Source: Diplonema japonicum
Taxonomy: Eukaryota > Protista > Euglenozoa: Diplonemea
Assembly (NCBI GenBank): GCA_964019335.1
Contig: OZ025682.1
Coordinates: 526,176-590,175, forward strand
Reading direction: 5' to 3'
Length of the DNA: 64,000 bases
The translations under genes and the position numbers were made by a program. Below, one piece after another: positions 13,950 through 64,000 of this stretch (position 1 is its first letter; the number at the start of each line of letters is the position of its first letter). The notes under the pieces were generated by a model. The model ran no database searches and was not told the origin of the DNA. It saw nothing but the letters and a program-made list of their open reading frames with translations.

Positions 13950-16623
13950 ATGGTGAACCACGCGAAGGCCTTTGTGGGCCTGCTGTTCGTTGCACTGACG
14001 CTCGGGCTCGCCGCCGGGAGCGAGGAGGCAGCAGCCGGTGGGGAGAAGTACGGGTTCCAGGCGGAGGTGTCGAAGATGCTGGACATCATCATCAACGCAC
14101 TGTACACGAACCGAAACATCTTCCTGCGTGAGGTGATCTCGAACGCGTCTGACGCCCTCGACAAGATCAGGTTCCTGTACCTCACGAACCCGAAGACCCC
14201 CATGAACAAGGACGGGGAGCCTCCCAAGATGGACATCCGAATCAAGGTGGACAAGGAGAACCGCCTCCTCACCATCTCGGACGGTGGGATCGGGATGACA
14301 AAGGAGGAACTCGTGAACCACCTCGGGTCGCTCGGGTCATCCGGGACGAAGAACTTCGTGGAGAAGATGAAGGAGTCAAACGATGCGAGCCTCATCGGGC
14401 AGTTCGGTGTTGGTTTCTACTCCGTGTTCCTGGTGGCGGACGAGGTGAGGGTGGCGTCGAAGAACGATGCGAGCGACACTCAGTGGGTGTGGAAGAGCAA
14501 GGCGGACGGGGACTTCTACATCTACGAGGACCCCAGGGGGAACAGCCTCGGGAGAGGGACAGAGATTGAGATCGAGGTGAAGAAGGATGCCGAGGAGTTC
14601 CTCGACACCGACAAGTTGAAGGAGATCGCCACGAAGTACAGCGAGTTCATCCAGTTCCCCATCTACCTTCAGACCTCGAAGACCGAGAAGGTCCCCAAGG
14701 AGAAGGAGGAGACCGAGAAGGAGGCGGGTGACGATGAGGAGGCCGAGGTGAAGGATGAGGGAGAGGACAAGGAGGAGAAGGAGGAGGAGATGGAAGAGGT
14801 GACAACCTACGACTGGGATCTTGTGAACGAGAACAAGCCGATCTGGCAGAGGAAGGCGGAAGAGATCACCGAGGAGGAGTACAATAGCTTCTACAAGGCC
14901 ATCTCCAAGGACTACCAGGACCCCCTTTACAAGGTTCACTTCAGTGCTGAGGGTGAGGTGTGTGTTTGTTGTTTGCGGGCTTGTTTTCTTTATCAACACT
15001 CAAAACAGGTTGAGTTCAGGTCCATCCTGTTCATCCCCAAGTCCACCCAGACCAACCAGTTCGACATGAACCAGCAGACCCAGAACAACATCAGGCTGTA
15101 TGTTAAAAAAAGAAAAGGAAACACAATACAAACCCATTCTCCACACAGGTACGTTCGCCGTGTGTTCATCACCGACGACTTCAAGGACCTTCTCCCCCGC
15201 TACCTTGGTTTCGTGAAGGGTGTTGTGGACAGTGACGATCTTCCCCTGAACGTGAGCAGGGAACTCCTCCAGGAGAGCAGGATCTTGAAGATCATCAAGA
15301 AGAAGCTGGTGTGTGTTCTAATTTCAAAAGAAGAAAAAGGAAAGGGTTTCCATTTACTATTTTTACTTTTTTTTTTCTCTCACAGATCCGTAAGGCCCTC
15401 GCGATGATGAAGGACCTGGCGGAGGAAGATGAGGCTGAGGAGGAGGAGGAGGAGGAGGTTGCAGAGGGTGAGGAGAAGAAGGAGACCGAGCCGAAGGAGA
15501 AGAAGTACGGGAAGTTCTGGGAGGAGTTCGGACGCAGCATCAGGCTGGGACTTATCGAGGACGGGACGAACAGGTCGCGCCTCACGAAGCTCCTGAGGTA
15601 CAAGACCAGCAAGTCGAAGGGAGAGTGGTCGTCCCTGGATGCCTACGAGGGGAGGATGCTGGAGAACCAGAAGGAGATCTACTACATCGTCGGGGAGAGC
15701 GTTGAGAAGATCAAGGAGACCCCTGCCTGCGAGGACGCGGAGAAGAGGGGTGTGGAGGTGATCTACATGACGGATGCGATCGACGAGTACGTGGTGGGAC
15801 ACCTCACGGACTACAACGGGCACAAGCTTGTGAACCTTGTGAAGGAGGCACCGAAGATCGGCGAGGAGGATGGTGAGAAGGCAAAGAAGATCGAAACGAA
15901 GAGGAAGGAGGCCTACCAGCCGCTGGTGGACTGGTTCAAGAACGTTCTCGGGACAAAGGTCACCAAGGTGATCCTCACGAAGAGGAAGACCTCGTCGCCC
16001 ATGATCGTGAGCAGCCCTCAGCACGGGCTCACCGCCAACATGGCGAGGATCATGAAGGGCCAGGCCCTCGGTGAGAAGAACATGCAGATGCAGGAGGACG
16101 TGAAGCGTATCCTGGAGCTCAACTACTTGAACCCCATCATTGACGAGATCAACAAGCGTATCAAGGTGTGTTGGAGAAAACAAGCAAAAAAAAGAAAAAG
16201 AAAAAGAAAAAACCCTCTCAAAAAAAAAAAAAACATTTTAAAAAAAGGCTGACGCTGAGGACACCCAGGCAAAAGACACCGCCGAGATCTTGTTCGACCT
16301 TGCCTCCCTGCAGAGCGGTTTCGGTATGTAGTCGACACACACCCCCCCCCCCCCCACAAACACGCGCTCAACTTTTTTCCCTTTCAGCCCTGGAGGACAC
16401 GAAGGGCCTCTCTGCCCGTCTGGAGAGGATGCTGAAGAGCGGTCTTGACGTGGACCTCGCTGCAGCGGATGTGGAGGAGGAGGAGTACGACCTCGACGAT
16501 GAGGAGGAGGAGGCTGAGGAGGAGGCAGGTATGTAGCCATCAACCAAAATAACGGCACAACGTAACTCTTACCCAGCTGACGAGGAGCCCGTGGAGGAGG
16601 AGAAGAAGGACGAGGAGCTTTAA
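13950..16623 (+). CDS. HSP90B1: ER Hsp90 (GRP94/endoplasmin), copy 1; introns 14958-15008, 15098-15148, 15309-15385, 16166-16247, 16324-16387, 16529-16576
   Basis: Signal peptide plus [27 protein letters not shown] and [15 protein letters not shown]. The spliced CDS is 766 aa and ends ...KKDEEL*, an ER-retention-like tail. Confidence 0.95.
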
Positions 16624-16855
16624 ACACGCTTCGATTTTCGTTTGACTTGCAACACCGTCAAACATCTTTACATTTTATTTCTCTTGTTTCAAGCAGATCC
16701 GACTTTTCTGCTGCGTTTCCCTCTCTTTTAAAACAACGGACGCAAAGTGAAACATCCGACATTCCACTTTGCTACAGGTAACTCGAATTAGGTTGTAGTG
16801 TAATAAAATGTTTTGAACAGCACTGCAACATATTTCACACGCACAACAGATTAAA

Positions 16856-19672
16856 ATGGGTGGCAAAGATGGAGGGAAAGGAAAGGGGGGAAAGGGAGCC
16901 AAAGGAGGGAAGGGTAAGGGGAAGAACCAGGCGATAGAACCGTGCGTCTCCACGGTGACGATCAAGAGGGCGTCGGGGAGCACGCCATTGGGGGTGGTCT
17001 TTGTGGGGTGCGAAATCACAAAAGTGAGACTCGGCACCCCTGGATCGCTTGCGGGTCTTGTACCGTCGATGAAGGTCTTAGAGGTCAATGGGAAACCCGT
17101 GACGTCGCCAGGTGAGATGAAGTCCGCTGCTGCCGACGAAATAGCCTTCACGATGAAGGTCGCGATCAACAGCTTCACAACAAGGCAGAAGGGGACGGTC
17201 AACTCGTGGAAGAAAGAGAAGGGCTTTGGCTTTATATCCCCAGCAGTACCTGTTTTCTTCCCTGCCACGGACAGCATCCCACAGAACATCTCCATCGCTG
17301 ATGTCTTCTGCTTATCGTCTGGCATTGTAGGTGAGTCGAGCCTTCTCGTTGGCCAGCCTGTTGAGTTCATGCTGCGCCTAGAAGGAGGCAGGGCAAAGGC
17401 CTTCGACGTGACAGGCCCCGGGAGGGAAACCCCTCTGATGTATAAACCTGAAGAGGACACCAAGACACCTGTCGCTGCCGATATCGATTCCATCGTCAAA
17501 GGGAAGGACAGTTTTGACGAGGGACGGAGCATCTGCCTTCTCTACGCGGCGGGGAGGTGTCCGTTCGACGACCCACAAGGAACAGCATGCCCTAAAGGAC
17601 TGCATGTCAGGAAGAAGATGGCCACGCAAGCAGTTTGCAAGATTCCTGATGCCCCTGCCGAATGCTTCACGGTCAGACCCATTTCGTACGGTGGTAAAGG
17701 CGACAAGAAGCTCACCTTCGACATCAGCGAGGAGGGGCGGGCATTCTACACCCTTAGTGCGACAAAGACGTACTACTTCAAGCACCTCACTTACGATGGT
17801 GCAGACACCGTCAGGTTCACCGATCTGAACACGTGGATCAAGCTCTCACGCGAAAGCATCATTCGCACACTGACGGGTTTGAAAGCTATCGCAAACAAGG
17901 CCAACGTCACACACGACATCCCCGACAAGTTGCAGGAAGTAGAAGAAACCCTTGACAGAATTATGCTTCCCGTCAGCAAAGCCAAGCTGAACCTATTGAT
18001 GTCGCAGTTCAAGGAGGCAAGCTCAAACACACTGACTGTCCACAAAGCGTGGCAGCTGAAGAACGAATCCTTGGACTTCAGGTTCCGTAGCACGGAATAC
18101 AACATGACGCAGCAGAACGGAAAGACACCCGACATGATCGACGGCTACCATGGCACTGCGGAGTCAAGCGTGCTGGGCATCGCTCTGCACGGCTTCGACC
18201 CACTTAGGAGGAGCGGTCAAGTATTCGGCGAAGGGGAGTACTTCGCGAAGGATCCAAGGGTGTCTGTTGGTTACTGCAGGGGAGGGAACTATATGTTCCT
18301 CTGTAAGCTGATCCTTGGTGAAGAACAGGACCACACGTGGGTACCACACCAGCAGTACTACATCATGAAGCAACGTGAGGGCAACATCCAGGCTATACCC
18401 ATGTTCCTGATAAAGTTTACGAAGCACGTGTCACTCCTTGACTGTCATCTGTCTTCGTATGCAGAGGATGCTAAGGAAGCTGAGAAAGAAACACTGCGCA
18501 GGTTGGGCGAGAAGCAAAGAGGTGGTGTTCATCCGTGCAGGGGCAGGACTGACGGTGCCATGATGGCAGCGAAGACCGATCGCCTATGGGTAGGGTGGTT
18601 GCACCCCACCTTGGCCAGTGACGAGGACGAGCTTGAAGAGAATGTTAAACAGTTCCTTGAAGGGTACCAGGTGTCCATGGTGAAGTCACAGAGGAATGGT
18701 GCTCGCGTCGGTGCATTCGTGGAGCTGGAGCACCCCATCACACAGCTGCAGGTTGCGGAGCTGAACACCCGACCGTACATGGAGCAGTACAGCATCTCAG
18801 TCGACGATGCCCAACTGAACAACCCTTACACCAACAACAAGCACTGCCCGAAACTTTCCGGCCCTGGGTCCTTCTGCAGGGGGTGGAACCTCCGTGGCCA
18901 CCACGACTGGACGGAAGGGTGCACCTTCAAGCACGACATCGAGAGGTTCGTCAACCACGGCGCGAGCGTCGCCTACGAGAGGATCCCCAGGGGGGCGAAA
19001 TATGATGAGCTGTCCAGCTCCATTCCTGGCAAGGTCATCGACATCCAGAGAATTGTGCACCCCAAGCAGGAAAAGGCATACGAGTCCCGAAGAGCCTTTT
19101 TGAATGAGAAACACGGCTACGTGATCGAAAAGGAGCTGTGGCACGGGACAGCTTGTTCTGTGCTTGATACGATTATTAAGAATGGGTTGCAATGTCCGTC
19201 GGATTGTGTGCCCGGGAAAGACTGTCCAGTGTCAGGGGGTAAGGGGCTCAGCACGACCTTGTGTGGGACGGACTGCAAGCACTGTACCGAAAGGCACGAC
19301 TGGAAGAGGTGCCACATGTTCGGGTTGGGTATTTATCTAGCAGACGACCCTAGCAAGTCGCACAGGTACGTCACACCGCACAAGGGCGTCCACAGCTTGG
19401 TGCGCTGCAGGGTGAACCTCGGTAACCCGTACCTCATCGAGGCCAACCTGTTAGAGGGCGACGGCCTGCACAACATTGTGAACTGCGTTGACCCCACCAA
19501 CTACCTCAGTGCCACCGGTGAGGGGTGGGACACACAAAAAGGCCACGATTCGTACTTCGTGAAAGGCCTGAAACACAAGGCTAAGGTAGGGTTCGGTGTC
19601 ATCAACAGCGAATACATCATCTTCCAACCCTATCAAGTACTTCCTCTTTACATTGTTAACTATACCGTTTAA
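16856..19672 (+). CDS. Multidomain protein: KGG tail-PDZ-cold shock domain-CCCH-PARP/ART-RRM-like-CCCH-PARP/ART (intronless)
   Basis: PDZ (PLGVVF...GSLAGLV...VLEVNG); CSD (GTVNSWKKEKGFGFI...DVF); CCCH finger (CLLYAAGRCPF...CPKGLH); ART1 (YHGT, FGEGEYFA); RRM-like (LWVGWL...AFVEL); ART2 (WHGT, MFGLGIYLADDPSKS, NSEYIIFQPYQVLPLY). Confidence 0.85.
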   Translation: MGGKDGGKGKGGKGAKGGKGKGKNQAIEPCVSTVTIKRASGSTPLGVVFVGCEITKVRLGTPGSLAGLVPSMKVLEVNGKPVTSPGEMKSAAADEIAFTMKVAINSFTTRQKGTVNSWKKEKGFGFISPAVPVFFPATDSIPQNISIADVFCLSSGIVGESSLLVGQPVEFMLRLEGGRAKAFDVTGPGRETPLMYKPEEDTKTPVAADIDSIVKGKDSFDEGRSICLLYAAGRCPFDDPQGTACPKGLHVRKKMATQAVCKIPDAPAECFTVRPISYGGKGDKKLTFDISEEGRAFYTLSATKTYYFKHLTYDGADTVRFTDLNTWIKLSRESIIRTLTGLKAIANKANVTHDIPDKLQEVEETLDRIMLPVSKAKLNLLMSQFKEASSNTLTVHKAWQLKNESLDFRFRSTEYNMTQQNGKTPDMIDGYHGTAESSVLGIALHGFDPLRRSGQVFGEGEYFAKDPRVSVGYCRGGNYMFLCKLILGEEQDHTWVPHQQYYIMKQREGNIQAIPMFLIKFTKHVSLLDCHLSSYAEDAKEAEKETLRRLGEKQRGGVHPCRGRTDGAMMAAKTDRLWVGWLHPTLASDEDELEENVKQFLEGYQVSMVKSQRNGARVGAFVELEHPITQLQVAELNTRPYMEQYSISVDDAQLNNPYTNNKHCPKLSGPGSFCRGWNLRGHHDWTEGCTFKHDIERFVNHGASVAYERIPRGAKYDELSSSIPGKVIDIQRIVHPKQEKAYESRRAFLNEKHGYVIEKELWHGTACSVLDTIIKNGLQCPSDCVPGKDCPVSGGKGLSTTLCGTDCKHCTERHDWKRCHMFGLGIYLADDPSKSHRYVTPHKGVHSLVRCRVNLGNPYLIEANLLEGDGLHNIVNCVDPTNYLSATGEGWDTQKGHDSYFVKGLKHKAKVGFGVINSEYIIFQPYQVLPLYIVNYTV

Positions 19673-50774: not shown

Positions 50775-52075
50775 ATGGACATGGGAATTGGTGCGAAACG
50801 AAAAAGGGTGGTGCCTTGCATTGCTGCAATTATATTGGTATTCGTTTTGGTGCAGATCAGCAAGACTTTGGTGCCCACGTATGATTCTGACAAGTACGTT
50901 TTTACTGGTGACGCGAGAATGAAGTGGGAGAAGGCAAGGATTTGGAAATGGCAGCGGGAGATGGGCTGGGTGGTAGGAGCGAATTACGTTCCAGCCACTG
51001 CAATTAACCAGCTGGAGATGTTTCAAGAAGCGACGTGGGACCCGAAGAGAATACGTTTTGAATTGCAGCTTGCCAGCAAGTCTGGCATGAACTGCATGCG
51101 TGTGTTTCTCCATGACCTACTCTTCGAGTCTGACAAGGAAGGCCTGTTCAAAAGGATGAACGAATTCTTATCCATAGCTTCTTTTTTTGACATCAAAATC
51201 CTCTTTGTCCTCTTCGACGCATGCTGGAGGGGAGCTGCCAAGCTCGGTCCTCAGCCCGAGCCGATCCCTTTCACTCATAACAGTGGGTGGCTGCAAAGTC
51301 CGACCCACGCCACCCTTCGGGATGAGAGCAAGTGGGACAAACTCCAAGACTACGTAACGTCTGTGTTGCAAAGATTTAAGGATGACTCCAGAATAGTAGG
51401 ATGGGACCTTTATAACGAGCCCTCGAACTTCGACTTAGATTTCCAACTTATTTCAAAGAAGTTGAATGTTGAGGAGGGCGCCCCTGACGCAAGACACTTC
51501 AGCAAAACAGACAAGCAGACACAAGTTTTGAAGCTTTTGCAGCTCACCTTTCAGTGGGCCCGGGCTGTTGGACCATCCCAGCCCCTCACAACGGCAATAT
51601 GGGGCACTATGACTCCCGACGACATGGATAAGGACTCCCTCAACGCAAAGTTCACGGAGGTGCAGCTCACGAACTCTGATGTGATATCGTTTCACAGCTA
51701 CAGTTCACCTGCAGACATGCAAGTCCTGATTGACAGCCTGCGGAAATTCGACAGACCCATCATGTGCACAGAGTACCTTGCCCGTGGCTATCACTCTACC
51801 ATCTTGGGGAATCTACCTGTGCTTCATAGACAGGGTATCAGCGCTTTCAACTGGGGGCTGTTTGATGGGAAGACCCAGACAGTGGTATGCAACTCAACTT
51901 CATTCACCCACCACAGTATCCGTGGAGCTCTTGGTACAAAACCTTCTCAGAAAAGCCATCTGTCTGGCACCATGATGTATTCAACACAGACGGGATCCCC
52001 TTCAACGCTTCAGAGACTGATCTCATCTTGAAGTTTTCAAAAAAATCCAATAATAAATTATTATACCAGTTCTAA
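50775..52075 (+). CDS. Membrane-anchored/secreted glycoside hydrolase family 5 (bacterial-like, GH5_13-like); intron 51885-51916
   Basis: GANYVPATAINQLEMFQ, MRVFLHD, HNSGWLQSP, WDLYNEP (acid/base), CTEYLAR (nucleophile) and NWGLFDGKTQTVYPWSSW. Confidence 0.85.
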
Positions 52076-52326
52076 CCTTTCTCCCTCATTGTCAAGATGA
52101 AGTGTCCTCCGTGATTTTGTTTGTTGCAACTAGAGCAAGTCAGAAATCGTGGGGTATGGCCGAAGGTTCTGACCATAACTAGCCTGCTGCAATATACCAA
52201 GTGTGATACAGGATTGCACTTGTGGCATGGGCATGTGGGTTGGACCTCGTACGTAGTTGCTGAGCATTCATCAGCTATGTATTATTTTGGTTAGTTCGTT
52301 GCTTACTTCTATGCACCCAGGTATAG

Positions 52327-52938
52327 ATGGAGCTCACATTGGATGGAATGAGAGATGTAGTGACAGACATGAAGAGCGCAAACATGGAGCTGGAGATGAT
52401 GATCGATGACTCGATCGAGGTTGGCGAGCAACAGGACTTCACTGACATACTGAACGAGCAGCTGAGGAACACGTCGCTTAAGAACACGAGCAATTTGCAC
52501 ACGAAGATGCAGTCGAAAGCCTTTGTAGGCCGCAGAATAGTTCTTGACAGTGGGAGCGAGGAAAGTGAACCAGAGTTGATTGAGAGTGCAGCACGTCACC
52601 AGCCTACTAATATTGGTGCATTGTGCGCGAGGCTCTCTCAGAATCAGACTCCTGAAGTGCTCAACGAATTAAACACTAAGCGCCTCACCTGCACACGAAG
52701 GCTTCCCAGGCTGCCCTCTTCATTTTCACCCGAACTCCAGGTTCTCACCGATAAGGTGAACTACCCAAATTTGCTGAAGACACAACAGGAGATGGCGACA
52801 AAACGCGTTGAGTCAGACAATGTGTACCGGGAGCTCATGAGAAAGCTGTATCTTTACCAGAACCGCCTGCTCCACAATCTGCCAGAACAGAAATTGTTCA
52901 AGGCGCTTGACTCACCTAAGCGTGCGATAGTACGGTAG
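52327..52938 (+). CDS. Hypothetical protein
   Basis: 203-codon ORF on the cluster strand, ATG directly after an AG; no recognised domain. Confidence 0.55.
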   Translation: MELTLDGMRDVVTDMKSANMELEMMIDDSIEVGEQQDFTDILNEQLRNTSLKNTSNLHTKMQSKAFVGRRIVLDSGSEESEPELIESAARHQPTNIGALCARLSQNQTPEVLNELNTKRLTCTRRLPRLPSSFSPELQVLTDKVNYPNLLKTQQEMATKRVESDNVYRELMRKLYLYQNRLLHNLPEQKLFKALDSPKRAIVR

Positions 52939-53045
52939 TATGGTTAGTGGTGACATCTTTCTAGACAGTCATGATGTAGTTTAGATAAGTTACAGTTTTC
53001 TTTATACAGCAATGTTTAGGGTGAAGTCTTTTTCAGGTGACAAGT

Positions 53046-54395
53046 ATGGAAAATGATGACGACGGGAAACTAAGCAGTTTAGAGCAGCTTTTCAGGAGGG
53101 CCATCGAACAGAAGGGAAACACACCAAAGCAATGTCTTGCCAGTGACAGGCTCAACCACGGTTTGCAAGTGTCCGACGATAGCCTGACTGTGACACACTC
53201 CCTGTCAGGTGCCAATGTGGCGGGTGACGCATCGCTGCAGACACAGTGGCCGCTGTCTCTGACGTGTGGTGTCGGGTACTATGAAGTAGTGGTGCACCAC
53301 TGTGGTGTGATAGTCGTAGGTTTAGCCAACCAAGGGTACCCGAATGTGAAGCAACCAGGGTCAAAGAAGCACTCTTGCGGTTATAAATCAGACGATGGAC
53401 AACGTTTTATCAACAATGGTGAGGGTACCTCTTACGGCCCAACCTATACTTCTGGAGATGTTGTGGGGTGCGGTTTCTGCAGCAGAACACGTGATGTGTG
53501 GTTCACAAAGAATGGGGAGCACCTGGGTGTGGCATTCAAGTTCCCAACCCCCGACATCGTTATCGACCACATCTTCCCTACTGTAGGGGTTGAACATGCC
53601 TCAGTATCGGTGAACTTTGAACTCAAATCCATGAAATGGTCTCCACAAGAAGTCATCGCGGAAGAGCGTGCCATGGCTTTGGAAAAGGTGCGCACTATGG
53701 AGCTGCCTACAAAAGACAAGGTATTTCATGTCCTTCACAACGAACACACCACAGACGGCAGATATCGTGGCGTCGTACCTGCTGCACTATGGTTACCATG
53801 ACACGCTGAAGAAGGTGATGGAGATTAATCCAACAGACACGAAGCTGCTGCTACGGAGGAACGATGGCGAAAGACAAGAAGAATGTCAAATAAAATCTAG
53901 CAAGCTTGTCGAGAGAAATACAGTGATACAAAAAATAATGAATGGAGACATCGTGGGTGTCATGGAGTATATAGAGAAGGTTTTCCCGGGGCTGAAGTGG
54001 GACGTATGGCCGTCGCTACTTAGCCAGCTGATTGTCGAGCACATCAAGAATGACACTTTAGAAGAGGCCATCAACGTCACTGCGAGGACTGAGTGCAACA
54101 CAGCTTCGGGTGAACCACATCCTTTAATTTCTGAAGTGCTTGGGCTTCTTGCATACAATGACCCAAGATCTTCGCCTCTTGCCTACCTCTTAGATCAATC
54201 GCAACGCAGAAGAGTTGCCGATCATGTCAACTCCGTTATCCTTTCGTCTTTACAGGTATCCATCTTTTCTTTTTTTTTTTTCCTACTTGCAAACCACAGT
54301 TCCATCCCGAGTCCATTCTTGAATCCTTGCTGAAGCACATTATGGTAATGCCCATCTTGGCTAAGGAGTGCTTTTACCCCATCTCCCTAACTTAG
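53046..54395 (+). CDS. RanBP9/10-like SPRY-LisH-CTLH-CRA protein (GID/CTLH ligase subunit); introns 53721-53754, 54256-54299
   Basis: GYYEV, CGYKSDDG, YGPTYTSGDVVGCG, FTKNGEHLGVAF; LisH VASYLLHYGYHDT; CRA GLLAYNDPRSSPLAYLLD. Confidence 0.85.
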
Positions 54396-54496
54396 AAGTG
54401 CTAACTTGTTCCATACTAAAAAAGTGTTTTTACACCCAGAAAACATTTTTTTTTAATTGATTGCTCCGCCCTGCACCTTTATACAGGCAAACAAAG

Positions 54497-55189
54497 ATGG
54501 CGGCCGTGGAAGCAACTCAAGGGGGGATGGTGTTGTGTAATGTCGGCGAGGACATCACAATCGGTACAAGGGACCTTGTGGTGTGCATTGGGCTTGTTGT
54601 TGTAGGAGACAAGAAGGTGGGAGTTGCGCAGATTGAGGACACGTTGAACATGGAAAGCATTAAGAAGGCCGTGGTGGGGGAGGAAGGCATTGTGGAGAAG
54701 GTGTTTGTGTGCAAGAGTGCTAGCAAGGAGAATGATGTGACTTTCATGCAGGACCAGATTATCAGGCATGTTCAAAAAACATTCGAGGGCGTTTCCACAA
54801 CTGTTGAGGTGGAGGACTGTTGCTTCGTGAATGGGAAGAGCCCACACACAATCCTTAAGAAACCCCCCACTGTGGAAATTGCCGTTGCGTCTCCCGAGAG
54901 GCAGGTCTGTCACTACTGGATGTCCATCATCCAGGGTGTCCACGAGGGCGATGACTACGAGCTTCTCGACATCGACGTGCAGTACGAAGGCATGAAAGAG
55001 ATCCCGTACATTATACAGTTCGATGAGGTGAAGGAGAGTATTGTGGACGGCACCTTCAAGGATTTTGCCTTGGAGTCACTGGAACAAGTTTTCCTGACGG
55101 AAGGTGTCGAGCCGGAGATTGCTAAAGAAGAATGGGACATTAAACTAGGCAGTGAAGCGTTTGCATTCTTGAAAAAATCATTGAAATAA
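54497..55189 (+). CDS. Hypothetical protein with weak CheD/NTAN1-like deamidase-fold resemblance
   Basis: IGTRDLVVCIGLVV...VGVAQIE resembles LGTxDxxTCxxxV...xAHxD, but with Q in place of H. Confidence 0.5.
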   Translation: MAAVEATQGGMVLCNVGEDITIGTRDLVVCIGLVVVGDKKVGVAQIEDTLNMESIKKAVVGEEGIVEKVFVCKSASKENDVTFMQDQIIRHVQKTFEGVSTTVEVEDCCFVNGKSPHTILKKPPTVEIAVASPERQVCHYWMSIIQGVHEGDDYELLDIDVQYEGMKEIPYIIQFDEVKESIVDGTFKDFALESLEQVFLTEGVEPEIAKEEWDIKLGSEAFAFLKKSLK

Positions 55190-55342
55190 GTTCCAGTCTA
55201 GAAGTCTGAATCATCCCCCCCCCCTCTTTTTTTATTCGCACTGGTGGGATGTGCCAACACTCCTCCATCGTAGTGAGTCTTTAGTTCTTTTCCAATGTTT
55301 CCTACTTTTCCAATCATGTTGTTCAGAACATACACGTTACAC

Positions 55343-56814
55343 ATGTCTCTCAAGTTACTCTCTGCCGTCGCTCTGCTCTGCTTTCTGCAGCCATGTGAGG
55401 GCAAAGGGGCAGGATACCGGTCATACAAGTCTGGATACTACAGCAGGTCAAGGTTCTACGGCTATGGTGGAATCTACCTATGGGGTGGTGGCTACAGAGG
55501 CTCGAGGTCTACATCAAGGTCTTCCACAAACCCCAAGGCCTTGGGGATCACGGACAAGGATGTATTTTGCAAGAGGGATGTGCGTCTGGACCACCTATCG
55601 TACACTACGCCTCAAAAAGTTACAATCAACTCCACGAGGCACTGCTACCAGCAGGTAACCCCCACGCACGGGTCGCCTTACAATGTGGACATCAACGCTA
55701 GCTGGATGGACGTTTACCAGTGGGAACTCGCTGCCGGCACGGGTGTGATCCCCAGTGTCTCCATGTTACAATACGATGACAAGGACATTAAAACTCCGAA
55801 CAGCAACTCTCCTTTGAAGGTGTTAGTCACAAAGTATGCTGCTACCCAATTTGATAATTGTTCTGTCTTGTTTAAATTTTCCACAGAATCAAAGAAGAGA
55901 ACACAACCCATAGTATTGATCTCAGCACCCTGACGTGGCAGGCGACAAGACAGGCCCCGGTGGGGAAGCCTATCTGGGGGTATCCTTTTGCATACGCGAA
56001 GGACGAGGCAAAGATGATGACGTTTTCAACACGCGGTGTGAGTAGCTCGGGAGACATTGACGTAGTGTTAACCTTTACGGCAGCTGGCGACTTTGCAGAA
56101 GACGCGTATGATGATCACACTTTCATCAGGCCGTCAGGCCTGCGTGTGGACATGACAGTCACCAAATTTCCGTTCCAGGGGTATGTTTAGTTTGCTTTCC
56201 ATTTAGGCTCCATCACAGCGTGAAAAATAGCATAGGTGTCGAATTCATCATTGTCAGTGCAAAGAACAGGCACTCTGTTGGCACACCAATTTCTACGAAG
56301 TTCGGGACGGAGTATGACCCACGTGCCATGAACCGTGTTGAGATCGGGTCGCCCTTGGATGCGGAGAAGCGTGGGAGGCACTTCTTTTCATGGAAGGGGA
56401 CGACCAACCTGAGAAGCATGTGTGCTTCAAAGTTGAGCCCTAATTGTGCACACTTGGACAGCAGTCTCACTGGTTGCAAGGAGGTTGTGACTGTAGCAGG
56501 GCTGTGCCCCATCTGTGCAAACAAAGGTTCACCTGAGTGCCAGGCTTTGGATGTGCCACAAAATGGCACCGCCAGCAGAATGACGGTGTGGTCACTTAAC
56601 TCCAACTCGAGGTATGTCGCTCAGTCGATAGTTCACACTTATCAGGCTTTACGAAAATACTACTTCGCCTTTTTCCAAAACCAATTACCTGTCCTGGGCT
56701 TTTACAGTAGGAACGTGGGACAGCGCAGAGCATATTGCACCAACAGAAGGAGCGTTCCTTGCCATGCCATCGCTCTACCTTCTGTTGGGAAGTGTGTTGA
56801 TTATATTGTGCTAG
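55343..56814 (+). CDS. Secreted, probably GPI-anchored protein; introns 55913-55941, 56181-56218, 56612-56645
   Basis: Signal peptide and a G/Y/R/S-rich segment. Three short introns join ORFs 55295, 55960 and 56220. Hydrophobic C-terminus PSLYLLLGSVLIILC*. Confidence 0.7.
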
Positions 56815-57672
56815 CCGCATCAACTGTACAATACCGCCTACTGCTATCTCCTTGACAATAACTGGTGTTTTTTATTTTCTCTTACAGTGCTCTTGTTTTC
56901 AGTCGGGCCGCAGCAAGATCGCGTTCTGCCCCGAACGTGATAACAAGACTACGCATGTACCTTCATGCTTTTCTCCCACTGCACTTTCAGTTCTTCCCCC
57001 CTTTGTTCTTTTCTCTCTTTAACAACGCAAGGGTAAGCACTTGTTCACAGTATTCGAAGTTCTTTTTTTACTCTTTTTTTACACAAAACATGTTCAGGCA
57101 ATGAAGAGCTTGGGTTGAGGCCTGCAGTTTTCAGTGGACAGAGCTGAATAAACAGGAACGAGCCTTGCTAAATCCTGTTGAACATCTCTTGGTTCTCCGT
57201 TAGCTTCGCGGTGGATGAAGATGAAGAGGAAAGCGCTGGAGCGAGTTTGTTGTTCGCAGACCTGGCAGCATGAAACTTGAAGTGGTGATGAAGCAGACGG
57301 CCATCAAGGCCTGTGTGAGCGTTAGGGCCCTGTCCATTTCCATTCGCGAGATAACAAGAACCAGATCTACTGGCTGTCCCCGCCGAGGGACACTGGCTGC
57401 TTCCGTGAGTACTCCAGCAGGTGCTTCCTGTGTATGCGTACAGCAATAACACCCGGACTTGTCCACAACGGGTACAAGTACGCAGCAAGATGCGGTGCTA
57501 GAGGGTTTCTGGTTTTGCTGTTTCTTGGCTTTTTCTTTCTTTCTTCAGTCGTCCCTGAGGTCTGTCGAGATCTTCGCCCGCAAACAGGGGATGCTGTATT
57601 TAGCCTCTTTTTACTGTTTTAGAGAGAGATACAACAAACGGCAACACACAACAAAGACAATAAACGCACACA

Positions 57673-57723
<51 letters not shown>

Positions 57724-57726
<3 letters not shown>

Positions 57727-58725
57727 CAATCAGCCTTTTTTCTTGCGATTGGTGTGTCCCTTGCTGCGGCTGCTGGGAGTCCCTTCACGAACCCCGTGTT
57801 CTACACAAGTGCGGACTGCACCGGGGTTGTGGACCCAAAGGCGGCCCTGTGGAGCTACGCCGCGAAGGACACAGTCGCGGTGAAACCGTTCGCGACGGAG
57901 GGGGCAGAGCTGAGCGGGCTCACGATCGACGCGTGCCTGACGGACAGCACTGTGTCGTACTCTGTGATGCTGAAGATCGACGACACAGCGTGCCCCGCGA
58001 AGGGAGCGGAAGCCTTGCAGCTGTCATACTGGAAGGACTCGAAGACGTGCGAGGGGACGGCGGTGGTCAAGACACTGAAAGCGGACACGTGCGTAGTGAC
58101 AGCCCTTGGGTCAGCGAAGTTCAACCCGTCGCTGACAGCGGCAGAACAGTGCATTGTGACGAACTACCTGCTAGCGATGAAGAAGGGCGGGGTGAAGACG
58201 CGCAGCTGGACGGGGAGCAAGTGCTCTGGCACGGAGAAGGCAAGCACGACGGAGTCCCTGAGCCAGAAGGCATGCGGGGCGGAGCCAGAGTGCAGTGGGT
58301 GCTGCCAGTCGTACGACGCGAAGTGTAAGGTCGTCACCAGCCCTAGCCGCATGAGCTCGCAGGCCGCATGCAACAAAGTGGCAAGCGGTTGGGTGGCTTC
58401 CCTCGTGGAGAGCGACTTCAGCGACGCGAAGTGCATCATTCAGGACAACAAGACTCCCGCCTCCAGGCTTGTGAAGAACGTTGGGTCGTGCAACACAGGC
58501 ACCCTGAATGGCGCAACCCTCTCCCTGCAGGCGGACCTCGTGGCGCCCCTCACCCTCGACATCCACTGCCAGTACGTGCAACTGAACGCCAACAAGAGTG
58601 TCAGCGGCTACCTCACCTGGGAGGAGTTCAACAAGGAGTACAAGGAGAACGCGTCTTCCCCTGCAGCCCACCCTGCCTCCGCCCTCCTCATCACCCTCCT
58701 GGTGGCTGTTGTCTTGTTGTTTTAG
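57724..58725 (+). CDS. Cys-rich surface protein with signal peptide and GPI-anchor signal
   Basis: Starts MQSAFFLAIGVSLAAAA, has many Cys, and ends NASSPAAHPASALLITLLVAVVLLF*. Confidence 0.8.
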
Positions 58726-59333
58726 ATGATTCCTAAAACACGCGACAAAAAGAACGTGCTAGGAAGGAAAATATAACTGCTGATTGTTTGTGCAAACCGT
58801 ATCCCTACTGTAGGTGAAACGGGCAAGCTGCTTTTACTCTTTTTTGCACTAATGCAAAGTTTGCTTGTTCCAGAAAAAATAAAAAAATAAAAAATAAGAA
58901 ATGGTGCCTGTGCCTGCGACAAATTGTCTCTCATGTCGCCATGACTGGCTGCCCTTACTTAATCTATCTTTCTCTCTATTTTATATTGTTTTTCATTCCC
59001 CTCTTTTTTTTTTTTTTTTTTTTTTTCCTTTTTTCACCTCGAAAATAAACTGTGAACAATTCGAAATTACCTGAACACCTAATACAATTCCCTTTCTCTT
59101 TCCTTTCTCCTCCATTTTGCTCTTTATTCAATGCTTATAAAAATGAAATCTAAAAAAAAAGTTTTTTTTGAATACTTAGCAAATGTACCCACAGGTTAAA
59201 GAGATAAAAAAAGAGAAGTAATTCCAATGACACGGATCGGGAAGCTAATGCGAAAGAGGCTACGGTGTGACGTGACACAGAACAGCAGCCCAAACGAACA
59301 TTTCGATCAACTGAGCGTGTGCGACTTGTCTAG

Positions 59334-61568
59334 GGGTACGCAGCGGCGAAGGCGGAACACTACAAGCGCCAGAAGTATGAGGCGGAGCTCGCCAAGACAC
59401 GCGTGGCCTTTGTACCTTTCGCGATGGAGACCTTTGGGGGGTTCGGGGAGGCAGCAGTCTACCTCACGAAGAAACTGTCCAGGAGCATAGCTGCGCGGGC
59501 TCACGGGGACAGAGTCTCGATACACAGGCGTGTGGTCCAAGAGGTGTCAACGGCCATGATGAGATCGATAGCAGGGGCGCTGTTAGTCAAAGGGCCTGTA
59601 CAGTTGGATCCAGGGCCCCCGGTACCGGACGGCGAAGAGGAAAAAAAGGACAACGAGGAAGCGAACAACGAACCCAACACTGAATCCGACACTGACCTCA
59701 CAGAGGACTCCTTCGGCAATGAAAAAACCACCGAAGCTGAGGAGTCGTCCGAGAGGGAAGTGAAGGGACAGGGAGGCGGACCCCCAATCACGGTGGCCCA
59801 CCAGCTGGATGCCCTTCTGGAGCAGACGAAGAAGGACCTGGACGCCCGAATGCAGCAGCAGCGAAAGGCGGAACCGGTGGAGGGTGGAACACAAGGGAAA
59901 GCGGGAGCAGGACTCGAAGCAGCCTCGCCGGGAGGAGAAGACACGGAGATGGCCGGAACAGGATCCAGCGAGAGGGCTGGGCAGGGAGGGGAGCTTGACC
60001 CGAAGGCCCAGGAAGATGGGAAGAGACAAGGGGCGACTGACGCTGCGGTGAACCAGACCTTGGACCAGTGTCCTAAGGGGGATACGGAGGCCCAGAGGGA
60101 CTCGAACAAGGGGGACCAGAGTGCGACAACTGCTACGAGGAAGATGACCGTGAGCGAATTCTGTAGGGAACAAGCTGCGAAGAGACAGGGCGGTGGGAGG
60201 ACTCTGAAGCCGCAGGCGGATGACGCCCCCGAAGGGACCAAAGAGGGCGGGAACGCACCGAGCGGAGGCAGCCAGTCGGGGCCTGACACACCTAGGGGTG
60301 GGATCCAGACGCCGGAGGGAGATCAGCTGATGGGAGTCGGGGCACCGGAAAGGGAACAGCAGGTGGAAGTAGGGGGAGACTTCGTTCAGCTTGACCCGAT
60401 TGATGTGGTGATGGGCATCCCAATTCCGAGAGCGATGGTGCCACTGAGGGCGAGGCCGGGGGACCGACTGCTCAAGTTCATCATCCAGTTCGAGGGCCGG
60501 GTGGAGATCATCCTTGAAGAAGGAACGGACCCTGGAAGGGAGAGGACTGAGGAGATGCTTCTTGCGAAGGCCGAGTCGCTGGGTGTTCCACTGGAGGTGG
60601 CTATGGCTGGCCAGATTGGTATCGCTGGACTTGGACACATGATGGTAAAGCAGTACTTCGCAAGCTTGGAAGGTGGGTCGGACGGAGAGCGCCGCAGCCG
60701 CATTGTGGGTTGTGAGGTGCAGAAGTCGGAAACATACCGCGAGTTCGAGTTCCCGAGGACGGTCCAGGATTTCCAGATCACGTACGCGTGTGGGTGTTCG
60801 GCGGTGCAACCTGTTCGTTTCAAGGGTGGCGTGCTCAAGGGGACTCTGGAAACGGCATGGAGGGTGGTCAAGTTGCAGACCCGGGGGTGCAGACACCACC
60901 CGACACCGGGGAAGGAAGGGGTAGTGGGCATTGCGGCGGGAGCCGGCGCTACCAAGGTGACACTACGTGAGTTCTTGGAGAGGTGCGACGCAAGGATAAG
61001 GGCCCCAGTGGGAAAGGTCAAGGACCTGATCAAAGTGAAGGCGTGGGTGAGGGATGGAAGGAAGGTCACCCTCGACGTCTACGAGGGGAGGGGGCCCTGC
61101 GAGAAGGAGACGAGGCGCACTGTCCAGGACCATCTGCGGAAGATGGGTGTTGAAGAGGTCGACCTGCAGTCAGCGGTGGTGACGGTCCCGGGGTTGTTCG
61201 AGGACGTCTCCTTTGAGAGGTACCTTGGGCTGTTGGCCCGGAAGAAGGAGGAAGACAGGGAGAGGCGGCCTGAGGTGGTTGCCACGGACCTCCCCACCCT
61301 GGAAGAGCTGAAGTGGAGCAAGAAGGACAAGAAGCGGGCCCGGGCCCGATCGGCCAGTACTGACTCGGATTGTGTGGAGGGTGGCTACATCTATCTGAAG
61401 GGTACGGGGGCGGATGGCACCGTGGTCGAAGCCAACATATGCAGGGGTGAGCTCAAGGGGATGACCGGCCCCCAGTTCAAGTTCTTGGCGGAGCACAGGT
61501 TGATGGAAGAGCTGGGAGCGACGACCTGGTGCGGGACACGGTCAAGGTATTGGTATCGCTGGACTTGG
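59334..61568 (+). mobile_element. 5'-truncated non-LTR retrotransposon remnant (CRE/SLACS-type restriction-like endonuclease C-terminus + long C-terminal extension), interrupted at 61568
   Basis: Frame from 59334 reads GYAAAKAEHYKRQKYEAEL...FVPFAMETFGGFGEAA...KLSR...VSTAMMRSIA, the typical end of an RLE domain. GC/purine-rich and intronless; no RT domain visible in the window. Confidence 0.75.
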
Positions 61569-61605
61569 CCAACGATTCTAAAGCTACAGTTTCTGTACTT
61601 TATTG
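61569..61605 (+). other. Spliced-leader (mini-exon) sequence, copy 1 (37 of 39 nt)
   Basis: CCAACGATTCTAAAGCTACAGTTTCTGTACTTTATTG. The 3' part CAGTTTCTGTACTTTATTG is the conserved kinetoplastid/diplonemid SL end, and the 5' part matches the diplonemid AACCAACGAT...AAAGCTA type. Confidence 0.9.
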
Positions 61606-61621
61606 GTCGTTCGTGTTCTTG

Positions 61622-61659
61622 ACCAACGATTCTAAAGCTACAGTTTCTGTACTTTATTG
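61622..61659 (+). other. Spliced-leader sequence, copy 2 (38 of 39 nt); 54-nt tandem period with copy 1
   Basis: ACCAACGATTCTAAAGCTACAGTTTCTGTACTTTATTG. Both copies are followed by the same GTCGTTCGTGTTCT. Confidence 0.9.
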
Positions 61660-62008
61660 GTCGTTCGTGTTCTGCTGGTGCCTGCCGCCTCTGCCTGGGT
61701 TTGCCGCTGCGTCCGTCGTCCGTCGTCGCCGTCGTCCGGGGGGGTTGTTTTGCCCGTCGGCCTGCCCGCCGCTCAACGAAAGGATCCCCTCCCCCCCAAC
61801 ACACACTATAAAACAAAAAAAAAAAAAATGGATCCAAGACGACTCGCAGGAGGAGGTGACCGCAGCCGCAGCCGCAGCCCGCAGGAGCAAGCCCGCAGCC
61901 CGCAGCACGCGCCGAGACCCACCCAACCAGGCAATCTGGTTGGGCAGTATGAATCCCCACCCCCTAGATCCCCCCACCCCCCTTTAGAAAAAAAAAATAA
62001 TAAAATAA

Positions 62009-64000
62009 AAAAAATCACTAGCAGAGACCGCGGTTTTGACCGCCGCTGCTACAACCACGGCCGCCCCAGCCGCCCTGAACGCCGCAGCCGACCCTGCCGC
62101 CCTGATCGCCGCAACTGAGACCGCCGCAGCCGCCCCTGCCGCAGCCACGACCGCCGCGACCACGACCCCTGCAGCCGACCCTGCTATTGTTGAAGAGGGA
62201 AGAAAAGAGGGAGAAAAAAAGGGGTGGGTACTGGTGTATGGTGAACACCCTCCCGGGTTGAGGACGGGCCCGGCCCCTGCCTTCCCGAAAGCCCTGCTTT
62301 CAGGAAAGTGGGAGGCCCTGTCTGGGAACTCAGGGAGGGAGACCCTCCAATACGGGTACCGGTGGGAGGGGACGAACGCCAAGGTGCGCCCCACCACGGG
62401 GATCCCAGGGGGGGCGGAGGGGTGGGTGAGGGAGGTGGCCGCCGCCGCAGGGATCGAGGTGGTCCCCAACCAGGTACTTGTCAACAAGTACAAGTCTGGT
62501 TGTGGGATTGCCGCCCACAAGGACGACGCGAGGCTGGGACCGATTGTCCTAGTCCTCTCGTACGGAGCCGAGACCACAATGGTCATGAGGAGGGGGGACA
62601 GGGTGGCGAAATACCTGGTGCCCCCCTTCTCATGGGCATTGTTGGAAGGTGAAGCGAGACACCAGTGGACGCACCACATCCCGTCCGGGATGTCCACTGG
62701 TGTCAGGGTGTCGATCACCCTGCGTGCGGTAGGCCCCAAGCTCACCCGCACACCCCAGGAAGACTCATCCCCTGGGTTAACAGACGAACCCCCTTTTTTA
62801 GATCCCCTTTTTTGTGGGCAAGGGGGGGTGGCACTCCCAAGAGAGGATAGTGCCCCACCCGCCCCCCTTTTTTTTTTAGAACCCTCTTCGGAGGAAAACA
62901 GACCCTCTTCGGAGGAAAATAGAGAGAAAGGGGAAGAGGTGGCACTCCCGAGAGAGGGTGGTGCTCCTCCCCCCCATTTGTCCCCCCCTTTTTCATTTTT
63001 AGAGCCCTCTCCAGAGGAACCCTCCACGGAGGTAAAAAACAGACCCTCTTCGGAGGAAAACAGAGAGAGAGGGGAAGAGGTGGCACTCCCGAGAGAGGGT
63101 AGTGTTCCTCCCCCCCATTCGTCCCCCCCTTTTTCTTTTATAGAGCCCTCTCCAGAGGGACCCTCCACGGAGGTGAAAAACAGACCCTCTTCGGAGGAAA
63201 AAAAGGCAGAGGGAGAGACAGCACGCCCGAGAGAAGGTCCCTCTCTGCCCCCCATTTTTTCTGGACCCTCTACGGAGGTGTACACCCTGGTCCCCAAGGG
63301 CCGGGGGCTTTTTTTGAGGGTGGAAGGGAAAGAAAAAAAAAAAACAAACAAGGAGGAACCTTTTTTCTTTTCAAACAACCAGGGGGACCCAGCACCCACC
63401 CCCACCGCCCGCCTAGGTGTGGTTGGGGCGGAGGCTGCGAGCGACGTGAGAGCACCACTGCACACCCTTGTGAGAAGACAGAAAAGAGCCGGCAGGGAAC
63501 CTAAGCCAGCGCCCAAGCGGAAGAAGAACAGGAGGAGGCACAGGAGCGAAACGGCCCTTCAGAGGCGTCGGGAGAAGAGGACCAAGGCGAGGGAGGGGGC
63601 GAGGGAGGCTGCCAGACAGGAGAAGAAAAGGCACCGTCGTGCGAGGAAAGAAGGGAGCCCGCAAAACCCGCAAAACCCGCAAAACCCGCAAAACCCGCAA
63701 AACCCGCAAAACCCGCAAAACCCGCAAAACCCGCAAAACCCGCAAAACCCGCAAAACCCGCAAAACCCGCAAAACCCGCAAAACCCGCAAAACCCGCAAA
63801 ACCCGCAAAACCCGCAAAACCCGCAAACCCGCAAACCCGCAAAACCGCAAACCCGCAAACCCGCAAACCACAAACCCGCAAACCCGCAAACCCGCAAACC
63901 CGCAAACCCGCAAACCCGCAAACCCGCAAACCGCAAACCCGCAACCGCAAACCCGCAACCGCAAACCCGCAAACCCGCAAACCCGCAAACCCGCAAACCC
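62009..64000 (+). CDS. AlkB-family 2OG-Fe(II) dioxygenase-containing ORF, 3'-partial; likely start ATG 61828 with a 1-nt frame discrepancy near the A-run 62007-62014
   Basis: Not in the ORF track, probably because it has no stop before the window end. Reads GRETLQYGYRW...PNQVLVNKYKSGCGIAAHKD...VLSYG...LEGEARHQWTHHIP...RVSITLRAV. HxD at 62516-62524, distal His at 62672, RxxxxxR at 62705-62725. Confidence 0.85.
62881..63200 (+). repeat. 141-bp in-frame tandem repeat (~2.5 copies)
   Basis: AGACCCTCTTCGGAGGAAAA recurs at 62900, 63041 and 63182. Confidence 0.85.
63658..64000 (+). repeat. Minisatellite: 18 x CCCGCAAAA, then CCCGCAAA and variants to the window end
   Basis: Read directly from the sequence. 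It contains no T, so no + strand frame has a stop; the 9-mer encodes (PQN)n in the AlkB frame. Confidence 0.95.

Follow-up and report, generated by a model that had tools for sequence, protein, structure and literature searches.

A probable telomere-associated non-LTR retrotransposon of Diplonema japonicum with an AlkB-type domain and a DNA-encoded spliced leader

Retrotransposons that carry a restriction-like endonuclease (RLE) and target telomeres are known in fungi, Giardia and insects, and head-to-tail arrays at chromosome ends, coexisting with simple telomere repeats or replacing them, are formed by Bombyx TRAS1/SART1, Giardia GilM/GilT and Drosophila HeT-A/TART. MoTeR1 (Magnaporthe) and FoTeR (Fusarium) are RLE elements of the class without long terminal repeats (non-LTR) that are confined to telomere arrays, where their orientation is fixed and telomere motifs occur at either junction. 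In trypanosomatids, which belong to the Euglenozoa, SLACS, CZAR and CRE1-2 encode a reverse transcriptase (RT), a CCHC motif and an RLE, and insert inside the spliced leader (SL) exon of SL RNA genes, which leaves the SL split. Here we describe an element family of the euglenozoan Diplonema japonicum. The analysed sequence, positions 61569-64000 of a 64,000-nt stretch of contig OZ025682.1 (positions 526,176 to 590,175 of the forward strand; this whole stretch is called the window), is the terminal part of that contig, which we number C35, and the end of the window is the end of the contig. It holds a 3′-truncated, frameshifted terminal copy of a non-LTR retrotransposon of 10-11 kb. Our preferred reading, which we consider probable, is that the family is a telomere-associated element of the RLE (R2/CRE/NeSL) type that multiplies through an RNA template and uses its own AlkB domain in the manner proposed below. 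Telomere-specific RLE retrotransposons are a known kind; what is unusual here is that AlkB is the most constrained domain, that an SL is written into the DNA and that there is one giant open reading frame (ORF).

Intact copies consist, in this order, of a DNA-encoded SL (nt 2-39), a leader of ~170 nt, one ORF of 2804-2990 aa, a T-rich 3′ untranslated region (UTR) and an A-tail. Within the ORF, the AlkB domain is followed by Pro/Ser-rich repeats, a basic region, a zinc finger, an OTU protease, the RT, a CCHC motif with the RLE, and an acidic tail. The longer copies extend from the point that matches window position 63657 into the OTU, RT and CCHC/RLE regions. The 2804-aa form is present on C16 and C9, whose ORFs show 8 differences in 8412 nt, and the 2990-aa form is present on C24 as a tandem array with a period of 10.6 kb, the units of which are 99.97% alike. 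Judged from these sequences, such near-identity would reflect recent activity or spread, and would speak for the retrotransposon reading. The RT of full-length copies matches PF00078 (E 1e-17 to 1e-19) and is missing from the truncated window copy; the best match of the RT region among solved structures (PDB) is to R2 proteins, and the RT-RLE module has relatives of 33-35% identity in dinoflagellates and animals. Downstream of the RT, the 2990-aa ORF contains the string CxxC-x9-H-x3-C-x8-RHD-x19-E-x9-KPAD-x15-D(VTV)...KRAKY. In spacing it deviates by no more than 1-2 residues from the formula C..C..H..C-RHD-E-(R/K)xD-D/E given for the RLE of SLACS, CRE and MoTeR, and MoTeR and FoTeR share this motif string (PMC12857005). 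The OTU domain (PF02338, E 1e-10 to 3e-12), with the catalytic motifs ...GDCLFRS... and ...GSHYRPV, lies beyond the break of the window copy.

The 3′ UTR is T-rich, measures ~740 nt and ends in ...CCCCCTTTTTA7 or a longer A-run. The A-tails vary from A7 to ~A45, and what comes next is either telomere units or the SL that heads another copy. Together with the RT and the CCHC/RLE of the longer copies, the A-tail supports the interpretation of the window copy as a non-LTR element; the view of the sequence-only reading, of a non-LTR element whose 5′ end is seen here, with an SL head and an AlkB of its own, is thereby borne out. A 5′ truncation (the copy starting at window position 59333) and the A-rich 3′ end were observed, and the element is not flanked by LTR-like direct repeats. 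Because the 8-nt repeat is itself the target, a target-site duplication is not recognisable. With one ORF, N-terminal zinc fingers, an RT and a C-terminal zinc finger plus RLE, NeSL/Utopia and R2 elements resemble this family. NeSL and some Utopia elements also have a cysteine protease upstream of the RT (PMC4640811). Their protease, however, is of the Ulp1 type, whereas an OTU domain is found here, and they differ from the present family in target and with respect to AlkB as well.

The 1.1 kb that follow the SL are matched near-identically at least 45 times in the genome, and the exact 23-nt leader occurs 62 times, each time preceded by the SL (in 2 of the 62 with an extra TG). The SL-leader junction is shared by at least 62 copies lying in different flanks. 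This settles the question of copy number raised by the sequence-only reading and rules out an assembly chimera at the SL junction, which that reading had named as a possible refutation. Nearly all copies are located within ~15 kb of contig ends and point outward, and they are found at almost every chromosome end: plus-strand copies at the high-coordinate ends, those of the minus strand at the low-coordinate ends. A copy either stands alone or is part of a head-to-tail array, in which neighbours have no telomere unit (CCCGCAAA) or a few of them in between. Three apparently interior copies, on C20, C64 and C115, end in telomere units directly before scaffold gaps of 200 N. The telomere arrays at these gaps (C20 at ~401.5 kb, C64 at ~166 kb and C115 at ~67.5 kb) are followed by non-telomeric sequence, and they are likely to be Hi-C mis-joins at chromosome ends, or else interstitial telomeres.

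Contigs start with (TTTGCGGG)n, for example C42, C63 and C9, and end with (CCCGCAAA)n, for example C68, C97 and C102. The unit of this terminal repeat has 8 nt, and the proximal units are 9-mers (CCCGCAAAA, or CCCCGCAAA elsewhere). No TTAGGG arrays are present in the genome. The D. japonicum genome note describes an assembly of 62.30 Mb and 118 chromosomes based on HiFi reads, and does not deal with telomeres in its main text (PMC13598402). Loss of telomerase as the cause of retroelement-based ends is not supported, given that a TERT-like frame is present on C41 (533974-534300; PF12009, 28.4 bits). As in MoTeR and FoTeR, the sense strand of the element is collinear with the C-rich repeat strand (PMC12857005). 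In those elements the 5′ end faces the terminus, whereas here the 3′ end does so, the polarity of the repeat array being reversed relative to the chromosome end. MoTeR and FoTeR also differ in having fungal hosts and much smaller ORFs, without AlkB, OTU or a spliced leader. TRAS1/SART1, GilM/GilT and HeT-A/TART belong to different clades, mostly of the apurinic/apyrimidinic endonuclease type, and have neither AlkB nor an SL head. The 5′ junctions vary among copies, and the flanking sequence is either a telomere unit or a truncated older copy. The older, 5′-truncated copy lies on the proximal side, which is what target-primed reverse transcription (TPRT) from a distal primer predicts.

We next consider the AlkB domain, which in the window copy occupies positions 62324-62725 of the plus strand. 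It matches PF13532 (2OG-FeII_Oxy_2) with an E value of 3.5e-14 and 53.9 bits, against a cut-off of 31.2, and other copies match this family too. The full AlkB signature claimed on the basis of the sequence alone is confirmed both by this match and by the motifs QYGY (62348), NKY (62483), HKDD (62516), WTHH (62666-62677) and RVSITLR (62705-62725). These include the Fe(II) triad, composed of the HxD at 62516 and a second His at 62672-62677, and the 2-oxoglutarate-binding RxSxTxR at 62705-62725. Residues H112, D114, H164, R175, S177 and T179 are invariant in an alignment of 62 sequences. An AlphaFold2 (AF2) model (pLDDT 90.3) adopts the double-stranded beta-helix fold; its nearest solved folds are ALKBH6, ALKBH8, NMAD-1 and ABH2 (TM 0.63-0.70), and the best PDB match by sequence is ALKBH8 (E 1e-9). 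Fold matches among viral models are led by giant-virus oxygenases and by AlkB domains within RNA-virus polyproteins (Picornavirales, and the replicases of plant flexi- and closteroviruses). In some plant flexivirus replicases, AlkB is placed before an OTU peptidase.

Conservation of the polyprotein between subfamilies is highest in the AlkB region, with 72% aa identity and a ratio of nonsynonymous to synonymous substitution rates (dN/dS) of 0.23. The corresponding values are 54% and 0.26 for the RT, 37% and 0.52 for the RLE, and 32% and 0.63 for the OTU domain; RT and RLE are likewise under purifying selection between subfamilies. The strong purifying selection apparent on AlkB would fit a functional enzyme, and the fact that the strongest constraint within a polyprotein of 3000 residues falls on this domain points to a role in the life cycle of the element. 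Its most likely activity, as far as can be told from sequence, would be on the RNA of the element itself, from which it would remove methyl marks that block the RT. The sequence-only reading had already proposed that AlkB unblocks its own template, and we infer the same.

The genome also contains ~12 host AlkB-type genes at interior loci, which gives some footing to the alternative put forward by the sequence-only reading, namely that a host ALKBH gene gave rise to the locus as a processed retrocopy. In the full-length copies, however, AlkB is fused with OTU, RT and RLE in one ORF, and at least 62 copies sit at chromosome ends. Moreover, the host paralog closest to the element AlkB reaches only E 2e-11. 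A quick AlkB tree, with weak deep support, places the element AlkBs outside the host clades and together with element AlkBs of D. papillatum; we used it solely for the conclusion that the element AlkBs of both Diplonema species belong together and are not nested among host clades. The full-length copies refute the retrocopy, which we regard as extremely improbable. A word-indexed protein search with the AlkB domain gave no match, and exhaustive HMMER searches found outside relatives at E 1e-15 only, with 36-40% identity.

Compared with the SL given for D. papillatum in PMC3795323, that of the window is different at 2 positions. As DNA, the SL exon occurs 226 times in the genome, where it heads several unrelated repeat families. 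In some of these families the SL is followed by an intron-like segment of ~21 nt (GTATCGACCGTGCCAATAAAG) that is able to pair with the SL 3′ end, and long runs of T or A often lie upstream of SL-headed repeats. The loci C59:512250-513000 and C15:778780-779655, both within ~1 kb of contig ends, probably hold the genuine SL RNA genes. Their tandem unit of ~350 bp has a conserved upstream box (...GGAGGTTA), a 39-nt exon, an intron starting from GTACCCAATCTG and a T-run terminator. The sequence passes from exon to intron as ...ATTG/GTACCCAATCTG... and is also given as continuing GTACCCAATC.... The leader of the element (GTCGTTCGTG...) has only the GT in common with the SL RNA intron. Since the leader is otherwise unlike that intron, the head of the element corresponds to the exon alone, as predicted for a reverse-transcribed trans-spliced mRNA and not for an SL gene insertion. 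In dinoflagellate retrogenes, DNA-encoded SLs, sometimes stacked or truncated, mark reverse-transcribed trans-spliced mRNA; those relic SLs belong to ordinary recycled genes, whereas here they head an autonomous retrotransposon.

These junctions also bear on whether the family is an SL-gene-specific element of the SLACS/CZAR/CRE kind residing in an array of SL RNA genes. The host is euglenozoan, the element is of the RLE type and adjoins an SL, and the D. papillatum homologues are automatically named SLACS, all of which would suit this idea. In our element, however, the SL is whole (nt 2-39) and is not split at nt 11/12, no SL remainder follows the 3′ end, there is neither an SL gene promoter upstream nor an intron downstream, and the flanking DNA consists of telomere units or of older copies. 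The junction sequences refute SL-gene-specific insertion, and hardly any weight can be given to it. The analogy with SLACS/CZAR drawn by the sequence-only reading holds only loosely: there the SL gene is interrupted at nt 11/12, whereas here a whole SL heads the element, which is targeted to telomere repeats and has AlkB and OTU domains in addition.

In 34 of 39 independent heads the SL starts at nt 2 (an A), and a start at nt 1 is not above chance. With a start at nt 2, cDNA synthesis stopped one base before the cap. Stacked partial SL pieces upstream of two heads (loci L005 and L034) look like template jumps at the 5′ end, as does the 54-bp unit of the window. An enzyme that erases cap-proximal SL methylations would fit the stop at nt 2. 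An Rfam scan of SL-bearing loci and of window positions 61300-62300 identified no SL RNA family and no ribozyme, and folding of the leader indicated no special structure (z = -0.07). In a probable RNA run from another organism, depth reached ~9000 over the SL, against 50-80 on its flanks (window 61544-61727), which is consistent with a leader that is trans-spliced onto many mRNAs. In the same run, contigs ending in the SL and partial cover of a related element were seen.

Based on these results we propose the following mechanism. The mRNA of the element would be trans-spliced and polyadenylated. The element protein would then nick the G-rich strand (TTTGCGGG) of the terminal repeats, probably after TTT, and the resulting ...GGGTTT-3′OH end would pair with the A-tail and prime reverse transcription (TPRT); the A-tail junctions in C9 and C71 read A-run/CCCGCAAA. 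Synthesis of cDNA would proceed inward, giving a sense strand that points outward and placing 5′ truncations and SL stutters on the proximal side. On reaching nt 2 of the capped SL, the RT would often stutter by template jumps, of which the 54-bp duplication in the window would be one instance. AlkB would strip m1A/m3C-type methylations, and possibly those of the cap-proximal SL, from its own RNA, so that the 10-kb template could be copied to its 5′ end. Terminal copies would later erode and be re-capped with telomere repeats, which would explain why the window copy ends at 63657.

Several observations, presented here and in the next paragraph, weigh against this mechanism. The C-rich strand (CCCGCAAA) runs 5′ to 3′ to the contig end, which is the opposite of the usual G-rich 3′ strand and is unorthodox. 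In addition, part of the spread could be due to recombination between chromosome ends. Taken further, this would make the family a domesticated or merely recombining set of subtelomeric genes, like yeast Y′ or the fungal telomere-linked helicase genes, that is spread by break-induced replication or gene conversion instead of ongoing retrotransposition. The subtelomeric position and high similarity of all copies are in line with such a family, as are the tandem arrays with their 99.97% identical units and the lack of an AG acceptor from which SL-headed RNA could be regenerated. Recombination would not account, however, for a 5′ SL and a 3′ A-tail, which mark an RNA intermediate, nor for purifying selection on RT and RLE, and reverse transcription typically leaves behind diverse 5′ junctions, truncated 5′ ends and SL stutters such as those seen here. 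We therefore judge this explanation quite unlikely.

The remaining points concern the SL. No SL-less master copy with an AG acceptor before the main leader exists among the genome copies, so that the mechanism does not account for the renewal of SL-headed RNA from SL-headed DNA. In some copies the SL is joined instead at a position equivalent to 61675, 61761 or 61783, and three alternative junctions, the 61675 and 61761 variants among them, do not follow an AG. The base after the SL is G at 42 of 47 junctions, and GT is found at 35 of 47, which could indicate template switching to SL RNA rather than trans-splicing. The RT might accordingly have acquired the SL head by jumping, once at the 5′ end of the element RNA, to SL RNA or to an SL exon in free form, or the head might be an inherited module derived from an SL gene. 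Besides the G or GT in most junction classes and the three variants without AG, the occurrence in other families of an SL plus an intron-like hairpin favours such an origin, and end-to-end template jumps are known for R2-type RTs. Trans-splicing, on the other hand, predicts the 61783 variant, in which the join directly follows a pyrimidine tract and AG (61781-61782), and, if it takes place on transcripts of DNA copies, also the relic forms SL + SL nt 24-39 + leader, which follow an internal ACAG; furthermore, the leader beyond GT is unlike the SL RNA intron. On balance an SL head obtained without trans-splicing appears unlikely, though less so than the recombining gene family. Finally, other SL-headed families, known here from their SL heads, also reach SL nt 2. 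AlkB may hence not be needed for reading through the SL, and the version of its role as an SL-cap eraser is weakened.

A more far-reaching interpretation is that diplonemid chromosome ends are built jointly by the retroelement and an 8-nt repeat with a C-rich 3′-ending strand, and that AlkB erases base methylations of trans-spliced RNA, either cap-proximal or internal, so that the RT can copy the hypermodified SL. We put this forward tentatively, as unlikely. If true, it would be the first case in which a retrotransposon encodes an 'eraser' suited to a host that trans-splices, and its lineage would have a non-canonical telomere. A separate question on diplonemid telomeres is raised by the terminal repeat and by the polarity of that repeat. 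As for the SL heads written into DNA, their stop at nt 2 and their stutters constitute a natural record of an RT meeting a capped, modified 5′ end.

Relatives of the element exist in D. papillatum, whose proteins, for example KAJ9442719.1 (2635 aa), show the same order AlkB-OTU-RT. Homologues from this species, including KAJ9446222.1, KAJ9439924.1 and P0161, are automatically annotated as 'SLACS 132 kDa protein' or 'tRNA (carboxymethyluridine(34)-5-O)-methyltransferase'. In the genome paper of D. papillatum, 'a dozen AlkB-type genes' are counted as host regulators and transposons are left for later (PMC10161547). Part of this dozen are transposon ORFs, with AlkB domains borne by the element. 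Two giant relatives, P0001 and P0175 (ENA; 3746-4614 aa, on contigs of 0.66-0.83 Mb), contain OTU, RT, UCH deubiquitinase and RNase H1 N-terminal domains without AlkB, and the same backbone seems to swap accessory modules.

In the literature searched, neither an AlkB-bearing non-LTR element nor the D. papillatum relatives are described, and no telomere-targeting RLE element with a demethylase or a host-SL head was found reported. The nearest precedent for an AlkB-bearing retroelement is provided by orchid Ty3/gypsy elements, which carry an ALKBH-type m6A demethylase (PMC9289625). Like the AlkB-containing RNA viruses, these are selfish RNA-templated replicons with an AlkB of their own, but they are LTR elements of plants, and the former are RNA viruses. 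Independent capture of AlkB by plant RNA viruses and orchid LTR elements suggests that long replicons with an RNA template may generally need to erase RNA methylation.

At the C35 locus itself, the parts from 59333 to 64000 are all on the plus strand. An older copy of the element, truncated at both ends, occupies positions 59333-61548 and is 99.7% identical to positions 14814-17030 of the C115 copy. It starts within the 'KRQKY' motif of the endonuclease, covers the C-terminal tail and ends ~100 nt before the stop codon of the ORF; a full-length copy runs on beyond the point equivalent to 61548. Upstream of 59333 the DNA is ordinary intergenic sequence. The older copy is followed by 20 nt of junction filler (61549-61568, attggtatcgctggacttgg; read directly), which is unmatched in full-length copies and could derive from a mangled SL 3′ end with leader. 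Both SL exons seen in the sequence-only reading are confirmed, at 61569-61605 and 61622-61659. The first belongs to a stutter unit (61569-61621) that is made up of SL nt 3-39, 14 nt of element leader and TG, and that forms part of a 54-bp tandem unit of 98% identity. The second, SL nt 2-39, is the true 5′ end of the copy, as homology with all other copies begins here. The leader (61660-61827) is pyrimidine-rich, with AG/G at 61781-61783 and an A-run ahead of the ATG.

The conserved start codon and N-terminal coding part extend from 61828 to 62014, the ATG at 61828 opening MDPRR... as in intact copies. In the A8 run at 62007-62014 there is one A more than in sister copies, which results in a +1 frameshift and puts this ATG and the AlkB domain out of frame with each other. 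The short leader with ATG 61828 and the open frame from 62009 to the end, both reported previously from the letters alone, are present, although not in one frame. That frame was indeed missed by the ORF track, the only reason being that ORFs running off the source are unlisted. Beyond AlkB, the previously noted 141-bp repeats and Arg/Lys-rich segment are both found: a coding tandem repeat of 2.2 copies that forms a P/S/E-rich linker (62895-63201), and the basic segment at ~63470-63657. The element breaks off after 63657, where other copies go on with GAGGAGGGCCCGCAGAG....

From 63658 to 64000 the sequence consists of the terminal chromosome repeat, with 18 nine-mers (CCCGCAAAA) and then eight-mers (CCCGCAAA) to the contig end. 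The repeat had been recorded as a minisatellite of the coding frame; it exists, but it is chromosomal, and being devoid of stop codons in every frame it lengthens the apparent stop-free frame 62009-64000. The break lies 8 nt ahead of the CCCGCA hexamer of intact copies, which is compatible with an eroded end having been capped at a telomere-like seed, and the capping positions vary among other terminal copies. The copy on C35 is the outermost one at this locus and is dead. That the locus is a chromosome end and the copy a dead one had both escaped the sequence-only reading.

Farther inward, the DNA at window positions 52000-57670 is unique. An A51 tract (from 57674 on) immediately precedes an ORF at 57724-58725 (333 aa), which has a signal-peptide-like start, is Cys-rich and has a hydrophobic tail. 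The family of this ORF is multicopy, with members of 66-88% identity on C73, C14, C10, C21, C12 and C72 and an array on C101.

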